Shown here: positions 5,012 to 62,600 of the stretch, one piece after another
Numbering within the stretch: position 1 is the stretch's first letter
Layout: every line of letters begins with the position of its first letter
Source: Oikopleura dioica
Lineage: Eukaryota; Animalia; Chordata
Length of the DNA stretch: 64,000 nucleotides
Assembly (NCBI GenBank): GCA_907165135.1
Contig: OU015566.1
Coordinates: 5,146,001 to 5,210,000, forward strand
Reading direction: 5' to 3'
Program-made: the position numbers and the translations under genes
The notes under the pieces: model-generated
Database searches by the model: none
What the model saw: only the letters and a program-made list of their open reading frames with translations
What the model was told of the DNA's origin: nothing

Positions 5012-5831
5012 ATGACCTTCTCGTCCCAGGCAGGGATGTACATTTTCTAAAATTTTCAACTGCGGTGCGTTGCAAACTGCGATTTTTTGACGATTTTCTG
5101 CGGTGCGAACTGCGAGATTTAAAATTTTCTCTTCGCAGTGCGGCGCAGACTGCGATTTCCTGCGATCTTCGGAAAAAATTGAAAAATGCGTTAAATTCTG
5201 CGATTTTCTGCGAAACTGCGGAAAATAAGCGGAAACTGCGCTTAATTCTGCGATTTTTTTGTGAAAAAATGCGAAATTTTCTGCAAAATGCGATCCGAGT
5301 GAAAAGAGTGGTCATTATTCTGACGGGCAGAGTTGCATTTTTGAAAATTTTTTCTGAGCTGAGCAAGCTGATCTGAGGTCGAAATTGAGCTGAGCTGGCC
5401 CCTTATAAAAACAGCTTTCTCAACTCAGCTGGATTAAAAAAATTGAGCTGAGCATATTTGAAAATTTTTGAGCTGAGCTGAGCTGACCATTCTTTTATGC
5501 TGAGCAAGCCTTCGGGCCGTCCAGCCCCGTTCCATGATTTTTAAGTTTAAGGGGCTTGACTGCGCTGCGAAGTGCGAAATTCCGCAGTTCGCAGGTCGCA
5601 CTGCGAAGGTTTCTGCGATTTCCCCACTGCGAATGTACATCCCTGGTCCCAGGAGGAATTAGCTTCCTGGCTAAGACGAGTGTACAACACTCATAATCCC
5701 TGGAGACGCTGCATGATTTGTCAGTGGAAGCCGGGCCGCCCTGACGAGCCGATACCACGAGGAGCGATCGAACCAGGTCGAAAATCAGATATTTTCGACC
5801 ATTTCAATAGGGAACACCCTCTCTGTAACAG
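5012..5831 (+). CDS. Exon of a putative C2H2/BED-like zinc-finger protein, interrupted by the 5031 MITE
   Basis: Removing the MITE plus one TSD gives an open frame MTFSSQEELASWLRRVYNTHNPWRRCMICQW...DHFNREHPLCN (CxxC...HxxxxH). Acceptor tttag precedes it and a gtaag donor follows at 5832. Confidence 0.45.
5031..5645. mobile_element. hAT-type MITE in a coding exon
   Basis: TIR cagggatgtacatt / aatgtacatccctg; perfect 8-bp TSD gtcccagg at 5023-5030 and 5646-5653; internal ctgcga and gagctga subrepeats. Confidence 0.9.
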
Positions 5832-7645
5832 GTAAGAAACCAACTTGGGCAGACGGAGATCTTAGGCAAACGGCGATCTTGGGCAGACGGCGATCGAATT
5901 GAAAATATAATCATAATTCAATTTAAAGAGATTAATTCGGTCACACGACGTTTTCATTCAGCGCTGCTGAATTCGTCGGTTTGCTGAAAACGTCGGTATG
6001 CTGAAAACGTCGTGTAACCGACTAATTCAAGGTTTCAGAAATTTATGAGCGCAAAGGAGACTTTGATTTCCGTTTATAATTACTAAAATCGGGAAATTTC
6101 TCATCTTGAATTATGAAATCAATACCAGCACGATAGGATAGCTTTGAAGTGGTAAAGTAAAATCGCTAGTTTTATGTCCGAGGCCTATAGATTGAGGAAA
6201 CAATAGAAGCGCCGAGTCCTCACAAGCGCTAATCCCCAACTTGGTTGAATTGATGGTTTCCCATATAACTGTTTCTTGTGATTCATTTTCGGTTCGTTCT
6301 ATTTTTGGAGTTATTTCTGATTGAAACTGAGGTAAAACAATCATTGTGAGTAGTGAGGAAAAGGGGAAAACTGATGAAACTCTTCCCAAAACCTCCTCCC
6401 AGCGAAGAGGAGTACTCATGCTTGATTTACAAACACATGCACAATCTTCTGACATCCGAATTACGATCCAGTCTCAGTAAACCGGAGCCTTTTTTCTTCT
6501 TGATTAACTCTTCCGGGAATAGTTTATTACGACCTTGATTGAGAATTTAGCGACTCTCATAATAAGACCATCCATTACGAAGGCTCTTCGTTATCAATGT
6601 AAACGATGTCATAATTCGGAAAGCTTCCGTAGAGTCCACGATACTGAATTTTTCATTTCGTCTCTTATTTATGTGTTTATGCTCAAGAATTTTCGAAAAT
6701 CGGATACAACTATTGAAAAACAATATTAGAAAATTGTGGTGGTCTTGTCAAGAATCCACGGTAAATAGCCGTTCAAAAGACATCACAGGACAATTTTTCT
6801 TTTTTTCTTCTCTCAATAAAAAAATCCTTCTATCACTTTAAATATCAATGTTCAAATAATGAGTAAAAATAAAATGAGATTTCGTTATAAGGCTTATTTT
6901 TGAGTTATTCAAGCCTTTATTTAGGCCATTTTGGCAAAGATATTGACTTCAAGCCGAAACTTAGCTGTTTTTTGTTAATCAATTGAGAAACCTCTCTGTT
7001 AAGGTTAAGATCTAGGATTGATCTATTCAATACGCCGATAAAGGGACCGCCTAGATAACTAAGTCCTGAGTTATTCAAGGCTCAACTTGGGGAATCGACG
7101 GTAGTGCCCTTAAGGACCCCCCCATCAAGAATCGTGAAAATGGGGCTCTTTAGTGAAAGGTTTTCTCAGAGACTATCTTAGGTAGGCCCTTAATTTGAAT
7201 TGCAACCTTCAGATTTAACCCTCGACTGCAACCGTTCCCCTTATGATGACCTCTCGATGAACTGTTTAAGGATATACAGGCCCTTAAAGGTAAGGTTGCT
7301 AAGTGCAGGTTTTTTGGGGGTTTTTAGTTGAGGTATACCCTTAATTTTTTTACAGGATAAATGTAAGGCCCTATTACCTAAATTTTCTATAGCAGCAAAA
7401 AAATTTTCAACATAAAGTTTTCTCCTCGTTGTTCAAAAAAACCAAAAAGAACAAAAAATATAAAAAATTTTGACTTTCGCAATTTGAGATTTCGCAAATC
7501 GGACGTTATTTTTACAAAAATAGGTCTTGAGCGAGCGCGAGTGAGCGCGAGCAGAGATCTCGCAATTTTAAGTTGAGCGAGTGAGCGCGAGCAGTGGCCT
7601 TGAAATTTTACGTGAGTGAGTGAGAATGAGCGCTTGCTCGCTCGC

Positions 7646-7887
7646 GGGTGACGGGCGGCCAGAACGGCGTTCTGCAAATACAGAACGGCGTTCTGCAAAT
7701 GCAGAATGGCGTTCTGCATAGGGATTTTTTTTACGATGTAACTTGATTCTTATCAGCATCCAGCGAAGCTTAAAGAGTAACTCCTGACTTAAGAAATTCT
7801 GAGATTTCCTTCAAGACAGGCGCGAAGCGAATATATTTTTTGAGTGCAGAACGCCGTACTGCTGCAGAACGTGGCCGCCCTACACCC
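7646..7887. mobile_element. MITE, 8-bp TSD family, intact copy
   Basis: TIR gggtg(a/t)(c/a)gggcggcca; internal cagaacggcgttctgca repeats; TSD tcgctcgc/tagctcgc; sits in gagcgagcgc-rich repeat DNA. Confidence 0.75.
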
Positions 7888-8851
7888 TAGCTCGCTTACG
7901 CTCGCTCGCGGCTCGCGCTCATCATTTTTTCAAACACTGGTCTCGGTTCACATTTGAACTTGAGTAATAACTTTTGAAAAGTAGAGAAAAGTTATGAATC
8001 TCCTCCGGAAGCTAGTTCCAAGTATGGGAGAGTATAATACTCTGAATATCAGGATATTTTTTAAGAAAATCGAGGCAAGTCGAGTAAGTCTTTGCTATTA
8101 AATATATCGACCGGACTTCCGGACTTGGACAGTGATAAGTCCGTTCCTGTGAAACACAGAAAAGCTTTTTTCAAATAAAAATTCAATTACAGATCGTCTT
8201 TCACCCAAGATCGTCATTTGCTCAAGTTGGGCAGATGACGACCTGGGCAGATAACGACTTGGGCAAATGACGACCACTCAGTTGATTTGCCCTGAGCAAA
8301 TGATTGCTCTGAGCAAGAGAATAGCGGATAGTACTTGAGCTTTTAGAAGTGCTTTTGTACGTCTGGTTTCATGAACGCAAATCGGCTGAATTTCCAGTCA
8401 AAGATGGCCAAAACGGGGTGTGATCCATTAATTTAACTCAGAAATTTTAGCCCAGCCGCTGAAGAAGACAACACTCCTGCTCCTCAAGAAGAAGAGTCAA
8501 TGGACGCTGGATTTGCTTCGGATGCTGCGACTCTGGGCTATGAAGAATCAGAAGATGATTCACATTCCCAAGGTAAATATTATATTTTGAATGAAGTTTT
8601 TGTTTTTGAAAGCATTAAGTTTTACATTTTTCCGAGAATGGAATTTTTCAAATTTTAAAAATAGATTGATTTGTTTTCAAAAGAATATACTCTGAAATCA
8701 AGGAAGAAAACTTTGCTAAAGGAAACTTGAAAAGATCTTATCATGTCGGTTCTGTTAACGCCGAAACGCAAAGCGACCAATTAATTATAACAAGGCCCTT
8801 AAATGGCTCATCAGTTATGTAAAATTTAGTTATAACTTTTAAGTTATATAA

Positions 8852-48278: not shown

Positions 48279-50768
48279 TTAGATTATATAAACTTGTTGA
48301 TGTTGAATTTGCTTGTTCAACGGAGGATTATGAAGACGAATTTCTAATGCTTCCATTTGTACTCTCTTTTTGTATGCTAGATTTCGGTGTAAAACTGAAA
48401 ACATTTTACTGAGATAGTCAAATCTAGATCTAAAATTATTTTGCTCATATTCTCCATTGAATCGAGCTTGAAAAATTTCATAATTTTCAGTATGAGAGAA
48501 AACTGCTGTTTGTTTCGATTTTTGTTGATGGTCAATAATTCTAGATTTTAGGCATTCACTCTCACCGATGTAAACTGCGCCGCAGTGACATTCAAATCGG
48601 TAAACAGCATTTACAGCCATATTATTATCAATCTTAGGTAACAGATTGGCAACAATTAAATTACGAATAGATACTGTCCTCAATGCCGTGTGCAGATTGT
48701 AGGAAGGGAGAAAGGTTGAAATCGTTTTTATCATTTCACTGGTAATTTTACTGACTCGTTGAGAAGTGAATGGAATGCACATAGAAAAATTTCTTTCAGA
48801 AAACTCGCTTTTTTCGAGTTTCCAATCTTTCTTCTCAATTTTACCTTCTTTAATCACTCTAGTTGCATCACGGATAATTTCTAAAGGGTAACCTTGGGCA
48901 TGATATTTCTCCTCAATTTCTTTTCGCTCTTCCTCCTGAGTTTTTGGATCCGAGTGTTTGAAAAGTGATCTTTTCAGTTCAGAAATCAAGACCCCTTTTT
49001 TCATGGATGTCGGAGCAACATCAATTTCAAAATTCATTGGGATAGTGTGTTTTCTATTGTTTCGTATTGCAATCATGTTTTTGTCATTGACATACACATT
49101 AAAGTCTAAAAACTTTATACCCTGCGGGCATGATTTTTCAACAGTAACTTTAATTTGAGGATGGAGATTTTGGAAAATATGATTGACCTGATCAAATGAA
49201 TTACGTTTGAAAAAAACAATTGTATCGTCTTGAAATCGCCTATATCCCAAAATAATTTTTTGATCAATTAGTTTTTGGATTTTTTCACGCTCAAAAATAA
49301 ATAGAAAGAAATCAGCCAAAATTGGTGAACTTGAGTCTCCCATAGCTAAACCACAAACTTGCTTATATGTTTTGTCAAAACATCTAAAGGATGTCAATCT
49401 TTGTAAGACTGATTTAAGAACTGGCTTCAAAATTGTTTTTGGAATTGGTCTTAAAAGCTTATCATTAGAATCTCTATATCTAGGTAAAATTTTTAATGGT
49501 GAATACTCAATATAAATATATTTTATCAAAAATTCAATTAAATCGTCTGTACAAACGTTAGGATAAAGCTTTGAGACATCAAATGAACAGTAATCAATTT
49601 CATTAAAATCAAATTTTTGTGATTGGATCCAACTCGAAAATTCTTTAGAGCTTCGGAAAGAAAATTTTGTTTTTATATTTCTTAATAATTTTGATAAAAA
49701 ATTACGATGGAAATTTTCTGTGATTGAATTACGAGCACTTATGATAGGTCGCATGTTTTTTCTTCGTCAAATGTCGATTTATGAACTTTCGCTAAGCCAT
49801 TCGATGTTTTTATGTTCATTATTGGTTTATTTCTATTGTAAAAATTTTTGTCTGTGAATTTTTCTAAAGAACGTAAATTTTTTCTCATTTCCGCTGAATC
49901 CTCTTCCGTCGGGTCATTTTCTACAAGAATAAATTTCTTTTTATCAGAAAATTCATTTAAAAGTGATTTCTCATTTTGTTTGCGGTCGAGAACCACAATA
50001 ACCGAATCCTTATCTCCAAGTATGAAAACTATGTCCTGATTGTTTTTAAGGAAATTTTTGATTTCCTTATTTGAACTATCTTGTCCGAAACAGCAAGAAA
50101 GTTTTTCATGAAAAACAGAAATTTTCGACTTCAAATGAAATCGAGTTAATGGTGTGAGAGCTTTAAAATCGTCATTTTTCTCTAAATGTTGTATTAAAGA
50201 ATCAAATTCACTCAGTAAATTAAGACAATGAGGACGCCCACCTGTTGGTGCACGCCAGCCTCTTTCTAGAATCGAAATAATGTTTTGAGGTATATTTTTA
50301 TTCGAAAAATTTTTGATTTCAAATTTAAGTGGTCTTTTAGATGAAGTAAATTTCTTTAATTTTTCTAATTTTAAATTCCGTTTAAAATCTCTTTCTTCAT
50401 CTCGCATTCTTGCGCGATTTTCTAGATCAATAATTATTTTCATTTTCTCTCTTTCACACGTAATAGCCTGATTTTCAAAAAATCTTGAAAGATTTTCATT
50501 AAAGATTATCCGCTTCTCTTCAACTTTTTTTGAACATTTTTCTAATTCTCTTAAAAGTATTTTATGTCTCTCCCTATTAATCCTAGATTTTCCCCAATTT
50601 TACAACAGTTGCTGGAACTTTAGTAAAAGTAGGCTTTAAATCATTTTCCGCACAGTCGCTTACGAATTCATGTGCTTTCCTGGCCCGGTGCAATCGACTT
50701 GCATGGTTTTCCAAGTTTTTCAAAAGTTGACGTCGTGTTCCATAAATTGCGTGATTGATAATTGACAT
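48279..50768 (-). CDS. PLE polyprotein: RT + C-terminal GIY-YIG endonuclease (two 1-nt shifts in A-runs)
   Basis: GLAKVHK...MRPIIS, SFDVSKLYPNV, KQVCGLAMGDSSSPILA, YRRFQDD, IKFLDFNV, AVYRFECHCGAVYIGES...RIIDH, MEALEI. ORFs 50583-50768, 49739-50443 and 48279-49754 join with single-base corrections near 50590 and 49760. Confidence 0.92.
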
Positions 50769-51758: not shown

Positions 51759-52259
51759 CCTACATTTATCAACACGATGTCAATTATCAATCACGCAACA
51801 TTCAATATTGTCAAACTGAGTTAAAGTTTACAAGCAGCTTTACTTCTTGGCCATAAAGACCAAATTTTGATTGTCCGATTTCATACAGTAAAACAGTGCA
51901 CAGTTTATACAAATCATTTTTTACTTTTTACAGTTTGAAAATCAGTCTTTGATGGATCTCGAATCAAGGGATTCCCGTTTTCTTGCTCTTCTGAAATTTC
52001 GCGGCTTAAAAACAGTACAAAAAGGGAGAGCTCGATTTTTACCGAAACTAATGGAAAATAATTTCGGTTCTTAGAGCTGGACGTGCTTGATTGACGAATC
52101 CTCTTCTGCGGGAAGCGCTGAGTGTTCACGTAAGCCTGCTCAGGCACGGTCGCAAGAGGCGTCCTTGAAGAAGTTGGAGTCACCAGGCTGGTGTAGAGCG
52201 TGTCGGGAGACGAGACTCCGCCGTCCTGGGAAGTGCTGTTGAGCGGCGAGAGCCTGAAA

Positions 52260-55200
52260 AGAAATGTTGGTCTAAAGGAAGTCCCTCTTCCTACGGTTGA
52301 TAGTTGTAACGATTCTTGGAGAAGAAATTTAAGTCATCGCGAGAGGAAGAATCGGCGAAAGACAGCGGTAACGGACTTGCCACTGAGAAAAGCGGACTGT
52401 CGGAGCCAATCGACACTTTCTTCAACATTCTGAGCGCCTCGTCGAAAGAGCATCTTTACTCGGTTTTAAATTAATGAAAACAAATCCCTTTTTTAGGTTA
52501 TTTAAGGACCCTCCCCCCTCAATTTTCTGCAAATCAATTTTTTTTAAATCTAACTGAAGCCATTTTCGACCCTTCTTTGCGATGAAGATCTTAACTAATG
52601 CTGTCCTTACACAAGAATATTTTCAGTATCATTTGCGAGATTACTATTTTCAAAGATTTAAAACCTCTACTGAGCGCAAAATTGATTCTCAGACAGTCAT
52701 CCATCACTTTTTCGACTTCTTCGGGCATAAAGTCAGGCTTCTTGAGTCCATGCTCTTCTTGGCAAAAGCGGAAGTCTCTGGTGTAGTACTCGATCATCTC
52801 AGCAAGGGTTTTCTCTTTGAAGACTTGTTCTCCCCAAGAGTATGCCTCCCACAGGAGAATTCCGAAACTCCAAACATCCGAGAACTCGGAGAACTTGGAA
52901 GGAAGAGATAGCACTTCCGGTGCGCACTGTCTCCACGGCAGCTGTTCGGACGCTTCCGAAATCAAGAATCTCGTCCCATCCACTTTTCTCGCCATACCGA
53001 AATCGCCGATCTTGGCGATGAAAAACTTCTGCGTCTCGGAATTCTCAATTGATGAAATGAATATGTTGCGACAAGCAATATCGCGGTGGACCACATTCAT
53101 CGCCGCTATATGTCGACAGCCTTCCGCAATTTGAGTGACTATTTTGTTCAGACAAACTTGGAAGCTTTCTTTTACTTTTAAAAGGCATTTTAAGAGTCAA
53201 ACCTAAGGCACACATTTAATTTTAGTCTTAACAAATCTCTCGAAAAATTGCCTTTCCTATTTCCGAGTTATCTTTGTCCGCCGCATTCAAATAATTCGGG
53301 CTCATCATTTTTTCCAAGAATGTCAGCAAATCCATATGGTCGCAGTACTCGGTGACCATGTACAGGGAAATTCCGTGAACGCAAAAGCCAAGCAGCTTGA
53401 TCACATTTCGATGCTGGACCAGTTCAAGAAAAGCGCCTTCCGTTATAAACTCTTTTAAGTTTTCCTGGAATTCTTTTTGCGAATTGAGTCCGTAGTGCAC
53501 CACTTTTATCGTTTTTATAGCCACTTTTTTGCCATTGGCCGTTTATTCGTGAGTTGATGCAGTAAACGTAGCCGAAGTGGCCCTGGCCGAGCTCTTCTTG
53601 CGATGACTCGTCGAAATCCTCGGTCTTCATGAACTTGTCCTCGATGCCTTCTACCGTCATATTGAGACACAAGTCCTGAATGTACCGCGTCGTTGCTCGC
53701 TCGATCTGGCAAAGCTGCGTGTCCAGCTCTCGCTGCTTGTTTTTTCTTCTTTTGTAAATATACAAAGAATGCGCTGCTACCAACATTATCACGCAGCAGA
53801 CAATCAGAGCGATGATCACACTTTTAGACTTCTTGCATTTGAAGCCAGCAGACTTTCTGTTGATTTCCTTGATGATTTCGGAATATCGAGTAGACGCGTT
53901 TTTGCCGAGCTCTTTCTCGAGCCACTTTGCAATTACTTGATTGTCGATTACTTTTTTCTGGTAAATAATTCGATTCGCAGAGTTCCCGTAAGCATCGCAA
54001 ATTTTCACTAAAACGAAATTTTTACGCATAAATAAACCGATGAAAATAACCATTAATGTTAGTTCCGTTCGTAAAAATGGTTTCCAAAATGCTCATTACG
54101 TTTTCTAAACTCTTCAGGTCTGCGCCAGTGTCCAACGACTTGTTCACATATTTATCGTGAATTCTAAGAATGCGAAAATCACAAACAAAAGAAAACTAAC
54201 TTGTAAATATCCAAGAGAGCTTGAATTGTCACAGTTCTCTCAAAAGTGCTAAAAGGCTGGTTTAAATCTGCACCTAGCGAGACAAGCTCTTTAAAGTGAT
54301 CCGGATAGCCCTTAAATTGGCTGTTTAATTTGTGGAAAAACGTGAATAAGAATTCGACAATCCTTATTTATTTAATATTTAAATATTATTATATAATATT
54401 TATTTCATTACAGGTTGCCGAGCCAAAGGCCTGAAGCAAGAGATATCCAAGTGGTGTTAGTCTGTGAGGCGTATTGCCGAAATTCAGGTTTTGGAAGGAA
54501 GATAGTTTCAGCCCATGCTTGACCATCATTCGCGAAAAAATAGAGAACGGCGAGCCGCCACGCGAAGATAACGAAACCTGCATGATTGATGGCGAGTTTA
54601 AAATAAGCCAGATGACGCTTCCATCGAAGGAATTCATCGAAATCTCGGGATGCATGAAGAACGAGATTCTCGACAAATTCGCATACGTACTGATCGGCAG
54701 ATTTATGAAATAATTCAAATGTTTCCCGAAGAATTTTTCTTCTATGGAGCTGATTACTCGGAGGTACAGCGAGATGTTTCCATTTACGTCTGGAAAGACA
54801 TCGCCTTGGACGACGTCGACTCCGACAACATTTGTTGCAAAAAGGAGATTGCGGATGACGTAGTTCAACGCGCAATCAAGGCACCGTCCATCGATACTTT
54901 TGTTTTTGCAGAATTTCAATTTCACGCACTCAGCCGAGTCAAGATATTTAAGCAGTTGGCTAAAATCTGAATTGCCTCCTTTCTCACTGGCCAAATTTCC
55001 ACTGAGAATTTGTCGAATAAAAATTTCGTTTTCCAAAAAATCCGAAATAATCTCCAGTTCCCAGGGGGACCATTGCGGCGGAGCTTGGCTCGTCAATTGG
55101 AATTTTAGTCCGTAGAGAGTGGAGAATATCACAATATCGACTGCGTCCATTATCATCAAGTTTTCCTCTTCAAACTGAATCGTTGTCAGAAACTCTGTTT

Positions 55201-58200
55201 TTTCTGGAAAGTCCTGTGCTTGGCTCGGCAGCCTTTGAAGATAACCTGGGTCAGGGTTCGGAAAATTTCAAGAAAAATGCGCGGCTATTTTAAAAAGGAA
55301 GCCGCATTAAGTTTGCCAAGCCAAGTCCTGCGTCAAATGAACAAGCTCCGTAATGTTGAACTGATCAGAGTCAAAAGTTGACATAAACAAGTGATGTTGG
55401 CTTTTTAAAATGACTTTCAGGATTTTTATGATTCTTTTCCCACTAATATTGAGTCTGTCCAATTCTTGCAGAGACCAATTAGCTGCATTGAGGCCGCGAA
55501 GAAACTCCGTCAAAACAAGCCCAATCGGATTTTCTGGAAAGGCGAGCTCGACATCTTCAATCAGCGAGTCAAAATACACATTTAAAAAGTTGAGTATTTC
55601 TTGAGTTTTGTAATGCGGCCAGCTCGGGTCAATGTACCTTCTGATGAGCTGGACAATCGCGGTTGGCTGAAGTTCTGTGGGAAACTCGCCAATTATTTTC
55701 AGAGTGTCGGAGATATCTTCCAAGTGTTCCAGATTCCACAATAGCAATTTTAATGGTGGCACTTCTCCAAGAGCAGCTAAAATTGGAACATCTTGGGAGG
55801 ATAAAAAGCTATCAAATAATAAGGGTTATTATAAGCAGACCCTAATAGACTTTGAGTACTAAACAAAATTCTAATTTAAAAAATCAAAATCGAAAGTAAC
55901 GATTTTTACCCAGAACTGGGAAAGTGCATTTATCCTCGTTAAATTGACTTTTCATAATATTCTTGATTCCTCGCTGCAAATTGCTGTGATGCGTAAAGAT
56001 CGGATGCCTTATAATGTGTTCGTAAGAACTGGTGATCATCAAGTAATGTAGAATCGTGCAATTGTTAACGTCGCGCGAATTAATTAGCTGCGTGCGAATT
56101 TCCAACACAGAAGGGTCCGAATTTACTTTGCGTGCTAGATGAGTCAGCATACTTTCGATGTCTTTTATGTAAGTCTGATAGCCAGTCCATCCTTATTTGT
56201 TATTAGAAAAGATGGCTGCTTTTTGGTTTTCGTCAAATTGAATTATGAGTTTTGATTCTGATAATTTGAAAAATAATTTCTTATTCATATTATTAATATA
56301 TTTTTTAAAAATATAATATGAATATTTAAAACTAAAGTTTAACTTTATCGTTTACATATTCTTATCATGTCTTACCAAAGCCGCCACCGAAAGAATCCTC
56401 CACAAAGTATTCCATCGGATTTGAAAAAAGGACCCACATGAGAATATTTCTTCGAAAAACAGGGTCATGACTAACAAGGGTGCTGTGAGTCTGTTCTCCT
56501 GTTTGGCCGAAGAGTTTTTCGAAGCTGTAGCTTTCAAAATTGTGAATTTTGAGGGAGGCGTAGAGTTGAAGCGGACTCATTTCGTAGAACACACCTGTGC
56601 ATGTTTCCGCATCTCCAGACCAACTGTTTGTTGACTCGTTCGTTATGCAGAGCTGCGAAGAATCCATCGAAATCCAGGCCCTGTCGCAGCTCAAAAACTG
56701 AACCAACAGATCTTCCTTGTTATAAATAAGCGCGAAACTAGCAAGATTTCCGTAAAGCCGAATGTACTTGTTTTTCAGCAAATGCTTGATCGGATGAAGG
56801 TAAAGATGTTTCTCGCGAAGCAGTTTTTCGTCTTGCTTTTGACAAGGCTGCATCGCGTTTTGAATTCTCCTCCGTAGCGTTCTTTCCCCGCAAAAATCTT
56901 GATTCGCTTCTTTCGGCTGAGAACTGACAGACACAATTTGACTCTTGGCCGGAATGCGCTTTGCAACGAGGCTTTTTAGGCTGTCGCGATCGAGACAAAT
57001 CGACTTTTGAATGAGTTTGTTTCTATCGCAGCCCGTTTCCGCGAATTTCTTCCGATTGATTTCGAAGAGAGACACCACGTCGTACATTAGACATTTTTCG
57101 GCAAAGTCGAACAAGATTCGGCAGAGTTTACTGTGATCGGAAGTGTTTTTCATGCGAGTTCCGTCTATCGGCGCCTTTTAATGGTTTCGAAAAAAAGAAA
57201 TGAAAAACGGAAAATATTTCGAATCAAACCATTTCATAAATCAACTCTGCTGGAAGTGTATTATTTCTTCGTTTTTCGTCCTTGATGAATTCCACCTCGA
57301 AGAAGTGGTGGAAGAGATCATTCAGTTCCACCCAACCAGCTTGCGACAAAAACCAATTCTTGACAAACTGTTTCTCAAGCAGCGGCGTCAAAAAGCGCAA
57401 AACACTTGTCATCACTTTGACGCTCCGGACGTCATTTATGTATTCTACGTACTCGAGATTCTCGACGATTCTCAGCAGCAATTTGATGATGTCGATCATT
57501 GAGTCGTTGAAATTCCTCATGATCTTTTCCGAAAACTTGTACTCCGAGCCGTAATGATCGACAAAAAGCAGCGTGGAATTGACGACGGAGTCGAGCACGC
57601 TCGCCATGGCGATCAGTTGGTAGCACTCGAAGTTGTCCTGCGAGCAGCTGTCCGGAGAATTGAAAAACGTATCCATGCTCTTTTGGAAGCGATTGACTCG
57701 CTCGCGGATAAAATTGCCTTCTCCCGAAAAGGTCTCTTCCATCCGTTCAATGCTCAGAAGCGAGTCCACCACTGGCCGCAGATTTTCAGGCTGAAGGTAA
57801 TTCATGAAGTTGAGGTGGAGTCGCTTGCTGACGTCCATTTCGAATTGCGGAAACATAGAAGAGAGCTTGAACTCGTTCTCGATCGGGGCGAAGGAACGTT
57901 TTCGGCGCTCAAGCGAATCCATCAACGAGTCGAAGAGCTGGCGCGATTTGAATGTGTCGTAAAGCTTAATATTTATGAAGAAAATTTTTACTTTTTTAAC
58001 CCATCACTAGAGCCCGAAACGATTTAATAAATATATTCTTGTTTAAACTTGCAAATTCAACCAAAAACGACTGAGAAGATGAAAAAAAAAGTAGTGCATC
58101 CCCTTAATTTTTAACTTTGGGCCGATTGAAAAATCGCCGATTTTATTTGAACAGAATTGATCTTTCTTTAAAAATCTAAGCCTGCTGGAACGTCGGCCGC

Positions 58201-59426
58201 ACCCTTAACCCCTATACGGGAGCGCGCCTAAAGAACCCCCTTACGGGAGCTGTACAATTTTTGTCGATTTGGCCTTTCTCTTGAGATAATCTTCTGAAAA
58301 TTCAAGGTTATACATAAACGAATATTCTCTTTTAAACTGCACTTTTAGATTTTTCGAAAACAAAAGATTTAGCGCTAGAATTTGTTTTTTTCATAAATTT
58401 ATTCTGCCATTTTTTTTGTTAAATATTCATGATATCACTCTAAAAGTACGATTTTTGAATTCTACATACTTGAAAACCTATAAATAAACTATAAACGAGA
58501 CCTCAGAGACTTCCAAAAGATGCAGTCAATTTTTTCTTTCCTCGAAGCGCGCGGGTTTAGGTGAGAAAAACGGTACTTGTACAGTGCTCGCGTTGCTTAT
58601 CAGACTGAAATTTTGCGGAAAGGTGTGTAAGGCGTGTGCAAAAACTCATTAGAGTTTTCATGTCATTCCGATTCACCAGTTCCATTTGGCTGGCGATTAT
58701 ATCCCGAAATCGACAAAAATTGTACACCTCCCGTATAGGGGTTAAGAATGTTCCAACAAAGAAAAAAAAAATAATGCATACTTATAATTGCTAAATTTGG
58801 GCCGAGCGAAAAATTACCATCCTATTGTTTGTCACGGCCGAGATAACTCCGATGTTGTGGTAAAGAAGTCCGCAGTCCAAAATGTCGAATCCAAATTTGT
58901 CTTTTGCCTCGACATCTGCGCCAAGATCGATCATTTTCGAGAGAAGAGAAACATAATCATTTGTGCGAAGAGTCTGCTTGTAAGGATCTGTCTTGGGTCC
59001 TTGAAAACAAGCGAGGCTGAGAAGAGCAGTTTGCCCGAATTGATTTAGCAAGTTCAGAGTGCTTTGATTGAGATCTGTTCTTTTGAGAAAACTTTCGACT
59101 TGCAAAAAGGAGCTGTCTGTGGTGGCGAAACTCAGGACCGGTATTTTCTCGCCGGCGAAAGAAGTTCCACACAGATACATCGTTCGATTCGACTTTTGTT
59201 CGCAAGGCTCGCATAGCTCCAATAAGAACTCATTTGTTATTCCCTCGTTAGAGTTGATCCTGTCTCTCTGCGAGTGGCAATAAGTGGCGAATCCGTCACA
59301 TGATTTCTCAGTACAGTAATTGAAGAAATCGGCTGCCAGGGCAATAAAGTGCTCGTACTGAAGATAATCACCTACGTTTCTTGCTTCTCTGAGAGGAAAG
59401 AATAAAAATAAAAAACATGCTCTCAT
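52260..59426 (-). CDS. Putative receptor tyrosine kinase: signal peptide, Cys-rich segment, ankyrin-like ectodomain, TM, TK (about 1,800 aa estimated; a few lesions)
   Basis: In-frame GT-AG joins link ORFs 58791-59426, 57224-57925, 56365-57153 and the exon containing 55884-56150. TM VIIALIVCCVIMLVAAHSLYIY followed by KRRKNK. Kinase motifs LGQGHFG, VAIK, HRDIACRN, DFG, SDVWSFGILLWE. Lesions: TAA near 56192, shifts near 55810 and 53525, and an unresolved join near 54400. Confidence 0.7.
55217..55322. mobile_element. Internally deleted hAT MITE (3336 family) in the RTK coding exon
   Basis: Ends tgcttggc / gccaagcc; perfect 8-bp TSD aagtcctg at 55209-55216 and 55323-55330; shares ctcggcagcc, cctg.gtcaggg and aagccgc motifs with 3336-3584. 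Confidence 0.85.
58209..58741. mobile_element. piggyBac-type MITE in RTK intron 1
   Basis: ttaa|cccctatacgggag ... ctcccgtatagggg|ttaa (14-bp perfect TIR). Confidence 0.9.
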
Positions 59427-59648: not shown

Positions 59649-62600
59649 TCAATTGTCAAGTGCGCAAAGTGCCGCGACTCCTCGGTTGATCCAGTGTTGC
59701 TCGCTCTTTGAAAAGGCTCATAAAATAAGCCTTTTGAAAATATAAAAAAAAAAACTTTGAAGCCTTTTCCTGCTCAGTCGGTAGTTGAAGCCACAGCACA
59801 AAATTCGTTGAATGGCCTTAAAAGAAGAATTGATACTCTATTCGCTAAATCTTAAGATTACCTGTTGTCGAAAGAGTTCCTTTTCTCGCACTGGTTTTGT
59901 AAACGGGACATGCATACATTCCCTTGCTAGAAATATTTGATTTTTCCGTCGGCTTCAACAACACAACTGGTAGCGGATCGTAAAGAGCCTGAATAATATT
60001 TAGCCGGAGTCCAAGATAGGAGACACCAAAATAAGGGACTTTTGGCTCAAAATGCAGAAAATCCGCGGCACGATTTAAAAAATTACCTTTGGCTTTGACT
60101 CATTGAGTTTCTGAGCTCTGCGGTCCCATCTTGAACCTTCCAGATAGAGGCCAGAAATGAAGGCACCATCATCTGGCGCGGTTGTAATGTCTTCCGGGGC
60201 CTCTGCTTCGACCACTTCAAAGGTAAAGCCAATCAAGTCGATCGGGATTTGGTACTTTCGGGCGTAATTTTGGTTCACAGCAGTTAAGAAACTCTGCGGA
60301 AAATAGAATCCAGAAATCCAGAAACAGTCTGGCGCGGCTCCGTTGTTGATCCAAGTCTGAAGGAAGTCCAGTCGGGCTGTCAAATCAGCGATGTAGCCTC
60401 CCAGTTTTTTAAGAGAAGGATAACTGCGCTTCGCCCAGGCAGGAGGTATTCTAGCGATCAGCATCGACTCGAATACATCTTCTAACTCAGAGTTCATTAC
60501 GACCAATCCCTTGATCGCCTTGCACAAGTTCTGTAAGCTCAGCCTTATTGTTCGAATAAGACTGTTGTATCGAATGAGCTCTTGTTTGAGCACTGTGTTC
60601 ATGCTATCTTCGTAGATAATTGGAAATTTTTTATAGATTGCTTCATTGTCAAAGACATTTGGAAGCTTCTGGAGAATGTCCTCAGCAATCTGCTGCACCT
60701 GTTCTTGTGGGGTCAATCCCGCACTCCCTGTCGCTCGAGGAAGAGTGATCAGAACATTGTCGAAGAGTTGTTGAGTTTCTGCTTGCTGACGGGAAATGTC
60801 CGCGTTTTCATGGAGGCCGAAGACTTCGGGAAGTGGCTCCAGAGGCAGCGATTTAATGTATTCAAGATAGCTTTCATAAGTTCCGTTCGGCGGGGCAAAA
60901 TAGTGACCGCTCGGCGAGAACTTGTAAAAGTCGTCTTCAATAGTCTCTGTTCTGTAGAAAAGCGAGAGAATCGAGCCCAGTAGGCGTCTGTCCTTGTCAT
61001 CTGTAACGCGGCCGCCATAATTGCACTCGCCAGTGAGATAGGTCAGCGCCGGCAAGGGGATCTCGTCGTACTCGTCCAAGAACATCGATATTTGTCGCAT
61101 GGAGATTCTCAGATCTGACTCGTTGAATTCATAAGCAATGTTCCATCCCAGCGGCCCGAATTTCCGTCTTTCTTGAATCAAGGCATGAAAGAAACAAAGC
61201 GCGAAAAGAAGCTTTTTCCAAGGTTTTTCTTTCGTGCAGCCGCCGAAAAAATCCGGATCGGAGATCGGATCAGACGAGTAAGATCGGATAACGTTTGCTC
61301 GCAGACCTCGCGGGGGCTCGTTGGTCATTTTGATAGAGTTTTGGAGAATAGAAACCGGGAAGTCGCCGGATGGATAGGAAGTCAACCAAAGACGGAAATC
61401 TTCGTGGAGGTCCTTGCGATCTCCGAACTCTTCACAAACGCGCTCCAAAGTCGGCATCCACGAAGCGGCTAAATGGCAATTCTGAAGAACTGCCCAGCCA
61501 CCATACTTGGCGGCTTTTTCGATGATTCTTAGTGCTATTGGTCCTTGACCTTGACCGAGCGAAATTGTTTCCATTTTCTCGTTGAAACTTCTGTCCGCTG
61601 CAAATTTGAGCAGCGCGGCCATCGGATCGGCTCCAGGTGACAGAACGAACACAAGAGGAGTTGTATTTGTGGAATCGTCAAATGATCCAGCAAGATCAAA
61701 CGTTGGTGGCTCGACAAACGCTCTATTGTTCAGTTCAGTCTCGATAAATTGCTGAACAGCTGGAACGACCTTGTCCGGTCGAAAACATCGGAGCAGGACA
61801 AGACGAGACATGGACGAAATCGAGTCATACGGCGCGGGAAAAGTCATATTGTGTGGATCAGAAGCGTCAAAAACTTTTTCCCAACAGGCAAGATCGAGAT
61901 TTTTTCGCGTCGAAAATAGCTCATGATCTTTTCCGAGCTCAGTTAGATTGCCAAGCTCGGACCATGTTTTGTCCGGCAACCAATGCGGCGCTGGATTAGG
62001 TTCGAGGTCTTCCACTAGACTAACGCCTCCAGTTAGAAGAAAGCGGTATCCAGGCTCGTCCAATCTTCCCGCTTGTTTCATCAGCGCCGTCGTCAGCGTG
62101 AACGAGAATAAGAACTTGTCTTTTTCGAATAAAGAGCGGCAAATGTTTCTGTACAATCCCAGAGTAAAGTGATCGTTTAACTGGCAACTTCGCTTGGAAA
62201 TATCCACTGTTTTCGCGTCGTAACCAGGCGCTCTCGATTTGACGATACTTTTCAGAAAAAGGTTAACAAACCATGTCAGACTGTATTGATACATTGGCTC
62301 GATGGCAGCCAAATCCTGGACGCAGAAGAAAAGAACAGACGCGTGAATCGCTGTTGGCAGATATTCTGCTCGTGTCTGATCAATCTTCGCTTCCGTTAAT
62401 GTTGCTTCCTTCTGCTTCGCTTGAATTTCTTCAGAAAGCGTCTTTGAGGAGCTCAGGATTTTAATCGCCGTCTCGTCTTCCAAAATATTTCCGTCCGACG
62501 AAAGCACCTCCAAAATTTTGTCCTCGATTTCTTTTAATTTGTTTTTATTTTGAGCGCCTTCTACGATGAGTTTACTCTTCACTTCTGCCAAGTCCGGACG

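Follow-up and report, generated by a model that had tools for sequence, protein, structure and literature searches.

The 64,000-nucleotide stretch of the Oikopleura dioica genome analysed here (GenBank assembly GCA_907165135.1, contig OU015566.1, positions 5,146,001 to 5,210,000 of the forward strand) carries a minus-strand gene for a putative receptor tyrosine kinase (RTK) with a very large outer part. We refer to the whole stretch as the window and give all positions in its own numbering. A preliminary description, made from the letters of this DNA, had presented the product as a receptor with a giant ankyrin-like ectodomain. We found that the gene is composed of 13 exons running from 59426 down to 51942, that it encodes about 1,900 residues, and that its sequence is that of a lineage-specific receptor of an unusual kind, not of a “giant ankyrin” protein. 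The exon model was obtained from three-frame translation, a splice-site scan and two relatives, P0006 and L050. The former is one of six natural O. dioica relatives (P0001-P0006), which were open reading frame (ORF) fragments from ENA assemblies matched in word searches, while the latter is a 3,088-nt JGI metagenome contig representing an O. dioica lineage that is deeply diverged. L050 begins with 120 nt of very GC-rich sequence unrelated to exon 6, perhaps a lineage-specific insertion or the chimeric end of the contig.

The 5′ part of the gene begins with a tttcag acceptor at 59442-59437, 10 nt ahead of the start codon (ATG 59426), just as described earlier; it was read from the sequence and may well be a spliced-leader site. 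Exon 1 (58818-59426, 203 codons, an ORF ending at a GTAATT donor) comprises a signal-like N-terminus, a six-Cys segment and about two ankyrin-like units at roughly residues 120-200. It is followed by intron 1 (57965-58817), a GT-AG intron which is long (853 nt) because it harbours an element with terminal inverted repeats. This element, of about 540 bp, looks like a miniature inverted-repeat transposable element (MITE), with inverted repeats of 37 nt (92%) and 19 nt (100%) at 58204-58270 and 58707-58746, and it is flanked by a 54-nt direct repeat (80%) at 58081-58134 and 58761-58814. Exon 2 (57230-57964, 245 codons) and exon 3 (56376-57174, 266 codons plus a split codon, with 9 Cys) are orphan ORFs bounded by the splice-site scan. 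Exon 4 (55910-56191, 93 codons), placed by splice-site scan and translation, contains one marginal ankyrin-like motif. The TAA near 56192 which had been flagged for checking occupies 56195-56193 within intron 3, directly before the acceptor AG, and is thus intronic. Exon 5 (55328-55791, 154 codons; ORF and splice-site scan) is orphan and has no Cys.

From exon 6 onwards the model is anchored by the relatives: L050 holds counterparts of the last 95 codons of exon 6 and of all later exons up to exon 13, which follow one another as in the window and are separated by short introns. For the 3′ two thirds of the gene the exon structure is established, while exons 1-5 probably belong to the same mRNA, as their open frames and splice phases suggest. 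Exon 6 (54431-55213, 261 codons) is orphan except for its last 40 or so residues, where the membrane-proximal ankyrin-like cluster sets in. Exon 7 (54201-54310) supplies the second part of an ankyrin-like repeat of full length and without gaps, which starts in exon 6 (TPLGYLLLQ, continued by GYPDHFKELVSLGADLNQ). Between them lies a GC-AG intron of 120 nt (54311-54430) which is absent from the collinear P0006 and L050. It holds the IVEFLF stretch once listed among the ankyrin units, and this stretch must be given up as coding, as both relatives read from LLL(Q/H) directly into GY... without those 120 nt. A GG-AG join retaining IVEFLF was rejected on the same evidence from the two relatives, and the junction is fixed, with LLLQ before it and GYPDHF after it, by the contiguity of exons 6 and 7 in L050 and P0006. 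Exon 8 (54051-54163, 37 codons; splice-site scan and L050) is weakly ankyrin-like. Exon 9 (53233-54007), supported by Pfam, P0004, P0005 and L050, contains the end of the cluster, a basic stretch, the membrane span, KRRKNK, the juxtamembrane segment, the glycine loop, VAIK and the remainder of the kinase N-lobe; its two halves are contiguous in L050.

Exon 10 (52613-53174; Pfam and L050) encodes the kinase C-lobe with HRDIACRN, DFG and APE. Its end lies either at 52667, as homology indicates, with a non-canonical AG-AG intron, or at 52613, with a GT-AG intron and 18 extra residues. The homologous junction of exons 10 and 11 in L050 is an exact 53-nt GT-AG intron, and its equivalent in the window (52454-52666) is an AG-AG interval of 213 nt; the sole canonical alternative would add the 18 residues inside the region of the last kinase helix. 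The gene had been taken to end at 52260, but three further conserved exons carry it about 320 nt beyond that point. These are exon 11 (52295-52453), in the expected place and 87% identical to L050, with the last kinase helix (CSFDEALRML) and the start of the tail; exon 12 (52043-52253, 77% identical to L050), a tail rich in Ser, Thr and Pro that bears the Tyr motifs YTSL, YVNT and NYFP; and exon 13 (51942-52004, placed by L050), the final 20 codons (PRNFRRARKRE...) with a TGA stop at 51944-51942. Most introns are GT-AG and measure 37-184 nt, and the in-frame GT-AG joins reported before hold for most of the junctions in our splice-site scan. The intron between exons 5 and 6 is non-canonical, being either GA-AG across a small insertion or GG-AG. 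Such splice sites, the shortness of the introns and the neighbouring dynein gene are all in keeping with O. dioica. The corrected gene model, as predicted from the genomic DNA, would thus have 13 exons, two or three non-canonical introns and three additional 3′ exons.

The product is a member of the tyrosine kinase family. Pfam PF07714 (PK_Tyr_Ser-Thr) matched exon 10 with 100.7 bits, the second part of exon 9 with 43.5 bits and the relative P0005 with 57.3 bits, all above the curated cut-off of 23.1 bits. The catalytic motifs GQGHFG (GxGxxG), VAIK, HRDIACRN, DFG and APE are found both in the window and in L050. The top PDB relatives are tyrosine kinases throughout, with JAK, EGFR, CSK, Trk, DDR2, PDGFR and Eph kinases at 67.8-74.6 bits, and the closest kinase paralogue in the genome, at 44% identity, is built differently. 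No Tyr occurs in the 30 residues from DFG to APE, either in the window lineage or in L050, which bears out the earlier observation of an activation loop devoid of tyrosine. The tail is rich in Tyr, one of which stands in a YxN (Grb2-type) context. Catalytic activity would be expected from this set of motifs.

One feature of the kinase does not agree with the preliminary description, according to which VAIK, HRD and DFG were all intact. HRD and DFG are (as is APE), but the reading frame of VAIK in this assembly differs from that of the glycine loop. The window contains an A6 run at 53525-53530 (minus strand) with one extra A, so that two frames are needed between GQWQK and VAIK. P0005 and L050, however, read ...NWQKVAIK... 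in a single frame from the glycine loop to VAIK, and the extra A is probably a homopolymer assembly error, or else a private allele. A 49-nt GC-AG intron bridging the frameshift was considered and rejected, as it would remove kinase strand beta-2 and the relatives read straight through.

A single-pass RTK architecture with a very large and unusual N-terminal region is supported by the predicted topology. There is one strong membrane span of 22 residues (53819-53754, Kyte-Doolittle 2.87), no other segment of the hydropathy scan exceeding 1.83; this span is conserved among the relatives and is followed by KRRKNK. The N-terminus is composed of MR and ten hydrophobic residues and then six Cys, all in exon 1, in keeping with the signal-peptide-like start and six-Cys segment noted before. 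In the region preceding the span (1,357 whole codons) we counted 17 N-X-S/T sequons, where at least 15 had been reported ahead of the single span and KRRKNK; shuffled sequences had 11.5 ± 3.1 (p 0.055), and the cytoplasmic 523 residues contain 2. The same region has 28 Cys, an even number. In the stretch of it that L050 covers, all four sequons are kept despite an identity of 51-85%, two of them in exon 8. The signal peptide and the orientation of the chain are predictions from these features. The last 400 or more residues before the span must nevertheless lie on the side opposite the kinase, because the ankyrin-like units cross the exon 6/7 and 8/9 junctions and because span and kinase follow on in exon 9.

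The ankyrin likeness of the outer part is seen in a few units and missing from most of its length. Searches and folds were run exon by exon, and repeats split by introns were tested through P0006 and L050, in which they are naturally contiguous. Pfam ankyrin models gave no match in any exon or in P0006, even at E<=10, and the locus was not listed in a genome-wide Ank_2 scan at E<=1e-5. In phmmer searches of the PDB, the last 100 residues of exon 1 and P0006 (exon 6/7) retrieved designed and natural ankyrin-repeat proteins almost exclusively, and exon 8 retrieved such proteins only. The whole-sequence E-values of 1e-8 to 1e-10 are inflated, because each repeat of the target is hit by one and the same query segment, and the single-domain E-values are about 1. 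A local ankyrin hidden Markov model (HMM), built from 29 Ank_2 segments of the same genome, scored exon 1 at 8.5 bits and exon 7 at 3.8 bits (0 of 400 shuffles reaching the score in either case), P0006 at 7.1 bits (0 of 1,000) and exon 4 at 1.5 bits (p about 0.02), and found nothing in the remaining exons. With hhalign against this Oikopleura ankyrin profile the probability was 87% for the last part of exon 1, 43% for P0006 (E-values of 4e-6 and 2.5e-4 among these two best segments), 8% for exon 4, and less than 1% for each of exons 2, 3, 5, 6 and 8.

The unit shared by exons 6 and 7 aligns without gaps over the whole 28-32-residue repeat and is conserved like the kinase. PDB searches with exons 2, 3, 4, 5 and 6 yielded neither an ankyrin protein nor a coherent match, and a BLAST self-comparison found no internal repeats. 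AlphaFold2 models of exon 1 (38.7) and exon 6 (40.2) were unusable by their predicted local distance difference test (pLDDT) scores. In the ESM Atlas exon 2 gave weak alpha-solenoid leads and exon 3 nothing. Some of the outer units are, by their sequence, truly ankyrin-like; we count about six degenerate ones in 1,360 residues, some two near the N-terminus and some four adjoining the membrane. The giant ankyrin-like ectodomain proposed before therefore stands for these few units but not for exons 2, 3, 5 and 6 (about 930 of the 1,360 residues), which gave no signal by any test.

The outer part of about 1,360 residues has no Pfam, PDB or database relatives. A Pfam scan of all exons, repeated at E<=10, matched the kinase alone and no family in the outer part. 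Searches of the species' own genome (a 64.3-Mb assembly of 19 contigs) with six pieces of the gene found no paralogue of the outer exons or of the juxtamembrane part. A full HMMER search with exon 6 against 1.84 billion representative proteins gave two matches, both of them fragments of the same gene from relatives. Word searches with exons 6 and 9 returned only O. dioica ORF fragments from ENA, 72-99% identical, and one with exon 1 found nothing. No annotated full-length protein surfaced in the database searches, and a literature search of incomplete coverage turned up no description of the gene or of an ankyrin-bearing receptor ectodomain. The earlier proposal of a lineage-specific receptor is in good agreement with these results.

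Comparison with the relatives indicates what is being maintained. Exon 6 is 97-99% identical to P0001-P0003 and 72-79% to P0006 and L050; the identity to L050 is 92% in exon 7, 51% in exon 8 and 85% in exon 9. Nei-Gojobori counts between the window and L050 gave a saturated proportion of synonymous differences (pS 0.65-0.9) and a proportion of non-synonymous differences (pN) of 0.016-0.29 in every compared exon. The lowest value belongs to the cytoplasmic juxtamembrane segment (0.016), followed by exon 7 (0.048), the kinase (0.05-0.09), the membrane span (0.08), the compared part of exon 6 (0.14), the outer part of exon 9 (0.19) and exon 8 (0.29). The outer exons are the fastest-evolving part, as is common in many receptors. 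In exon 12 the motifs YVNT and NYFP are preserved in L050, and the first 11 codons of exon 13 differ by six synonymous and no non-synonymous changes, the stop being common to both. The gene is under strong purifying selection and is old within the species complex.

On this evidence we consider it probable (about 0.62) that the gene is functional, present in single copy and confined to Oikopleura, and that its product of about 1,900 residues is a type I membrane tyrosine kinase. Such a protein would present a cleavable signal-like N-terminus and the six-Cys segment on the outside of the cell or in a lumen. The outer 1,360 or so residues would be mostly orphan and probably largely helical. Two or so degenerate ankyrin-like units would sit close to the N-terminal end, and four or so would form a conserved cluster immediately ahead of the membrane. 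The cytoplasmic part would consist of a juxtamembrane segment of high conservation, a kinase with all catalytic motifs minus the activation-loop Tyr, and a multi-Tyr tail. We infer a signalling route in which a ligand, or contact with a cell or matrix, would pair two receptors. The kinase might then be activated through juxtamembrane release or an allosteric dimer, not by activation-loop phosphorylation, and phosphorylated tyrosines of the juxtamembrane segment and the tail could draw SH2 adaptors.

Several observations weigh against a receptor of this kind. The kinase of this assembly contains a frameshift. The very basic flank KCKKSKS, predicted to lie just outside the span, is unusual on the exoplasmic side. 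Ankyrin repeats and alpha-solenoids are typical of cytoplasmic proteins, and the ankyrin-like units and the solenoid leads of exon 2 resemble these. The models predicted for exons 1 and 6 cannot be used. The gene structure was read from DNA rather than from transcripts, and the connection of exon 1 to the rest is made purely by open frames and splice phases, orthologous sequence covering exons 6-13.

These points give room to other explanations. It is rather unlikely, in our judgement, that the ankyrin resemblance is just a motif-level echo, which arose in a helical sequence rich in Leu by chance or by convergence, and that the outer domain contains no ankyrin folds. Such an echo would fit the lack of any Pfam Ank match even at E<=10, the single-domain E-values of about 1 against PDB ankyrins behind inflated whole-sequence values, the failure of BLAST to find internal repeats and the unusable structure models. 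It would not be expected, however, that three separate segments each fetch ankyrin-repeat proteins almost exclusively, that the exon 6/7 unit aligns gap-free over the whole 28-32 residues and is conserved like the kinase (pN 0.048), or that the Oikopleura ankyrin HMM scores above all shuffles (0/400 and 0/1000) with hhalign E-values of 4e-6 and 2.5e-4. We also regard as quite improbable a merger of two genes, with exons 1-5 coding for a helical protein of their own, probably cytosolic, and the receptor beginning at exon 6 or close to it. It is true that the exon model derives from DNA and not from cDNA, that intron 1 has 853 nt, that the exon 5/6 intron is non-canonical and spans an inserted element, that L050 stops inside exon 6, and that the Atlas leads of exon 2 are cytoplasmic alpha-solenoids. 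Yet every join preserves the frame and introns are short, exons 2, 3 and 6 are open over 245-266 codons, and none of exons 2-6 offers a plausible start with a signal; without exon 1, several hundred residues before the span, opposite the kinase, would lack a route across the membrane. A still slimmer chance is that the gene is a pseudogene in this individual and the frameshift before VAIK real. The window does require a frame change in the A6 run at 53525-53530, but one-base homopolymer errors are common in long-read assemblies, all other exons are open, a single frame runs through this stretch in P0005 and L050, and the gene is under strong constraint.

The remaining question concerns the neighbour. 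The stop codon of a dynein heavy-chain gene (protein end ...HWINRGVAALCALDN) lies at 59651-59653 on the minus strand, about 224 nt upstream of the ATG of the kinase gene when read from the sequence, close to the 220 bp given before. An AATAAA occurs at about 59605, some 45 nt downstream of the dynein stop, and about 150 nt remain between it and the tttcag acceptor. The preliminary description saw in the kinase gene a possible downstream cistron of an operon with the dynein gene, and the shared strand, the stop about 224 nt upstream and the tttcag acceptor 10 nt before the ATG would be compatible with this. Operons of O. dioica, however, are defined by gaps of <=60 bp, which the 224-nt gap exceeds, and the single spliced leader of this species is likewise attached to genes that are monocistronic (PMC7986045). 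With about 150 nt left after the dynein AATAAA, the proposal appears weak and we consider it improbable; co-transcription with dynein is not indicated.

The proposed Oikopleura receptor shares with animal RTKs the signal-like N-terminus, the one span, the basic stop-transfer sequence, the juxtamembrane segment, the HRDxAxRN-type kinase and the Tyr-rich tail. It differs from them in that its kinase fits no subfamily better than another (JAK, EGFR, CSK, Trk, DDR, PDGFR and Eph all within 67.8-74.6 bits), in the absence of an activation-loop Tyr, and in an outer domain without Ig, FN3, LRR, Cys-rich or discoidin modules by Pfam. SHARK/HTK16, a cytoplasmic protein of SH2-ankyrin-SH2-kinase order, likewise carries ankyrin units on the same chain as a tyrosine kinase. 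SHARK, however, lacks a membrane span and possesses SH2 domains as well as ankyrin repeats that Pfam recognises clearly, whereas the Oikopleura receptor has no SH2 and its ankyrin-like units lie across the membrane span from the kinase. Similarity between the two kinases is low (E 1.3e-4 over 37 residues). A gene of the SHARK/HTK16 type (SH2-ankyrin-SH2-tyrosine kinase) is present in O. dioica at C1:8384835-8388095; it is the genome's only site where Ank_2 and kinase matches occur together and is unrelated to the receptor gene. As for designed and consensus proteins, the repeat consensus of DARPins and NI3C (...V.LL...GADVNA.D..G.T...) is matched by the last part of exon 1 and by the unit of exons 6 and 7, a cap-like last unit included, but the Oikopleura outer part differs in having about six degenerate units in 1,360 residues and no Pfam match.

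Classes of RTKs are distinguished by the outer domain, and those of animals are generally regarded as a largely fixed set. If our reading holds, this gene would represent a new receptor design, namely a chordate receptor with a relative-less outer part of 1,360 residues whose best-conserved outer piece is ankyrin-like, and it would offer a clear example of receptor birth in a fast-evolving genome. A more specific scenario, which we put forward tentatively and at somewhat less than even odds, is that ankyrin repeats, in animals otherwise an intracellular module, have been put to use on the extracellular side, where they would make up the conserved segment nearest the membrane in a chordate RTK. 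This receptor might have been born in the Oikopleura lineage, when a cytosolic ankyrin or helical-repeat gene was fused to a span-plus-kinase gene and a signal peptide was gained. On the practical side, the gene model is corrected and a probable homopolymer assembly error is flagged.

Two further observations concern other loci. The nearest kinase paralogue (44%; C1:11391000-11400999) has an 856-codon frame at 6085-8655 (+) of that interval, in which the tyrosine kinase is followed by a long helical C-terminal extension. Its preceding exon (ORF 5532-6113, +) carries a coiled coil and a membrane-span-like segment, and a neighbour on the opposite strand (ORF 173-2845, -) encodes a large multi-span protein with a channel-like look. 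Within the window, a retroelement lies at 48279-50443 on the minus strand, with two adjoining ORFs of 491 and 234 residues and a weak RVT_1 match (E 0.0011). By eye it has a GIY-YIG-like C-terminal motif, and it may be a Penelope-like element.

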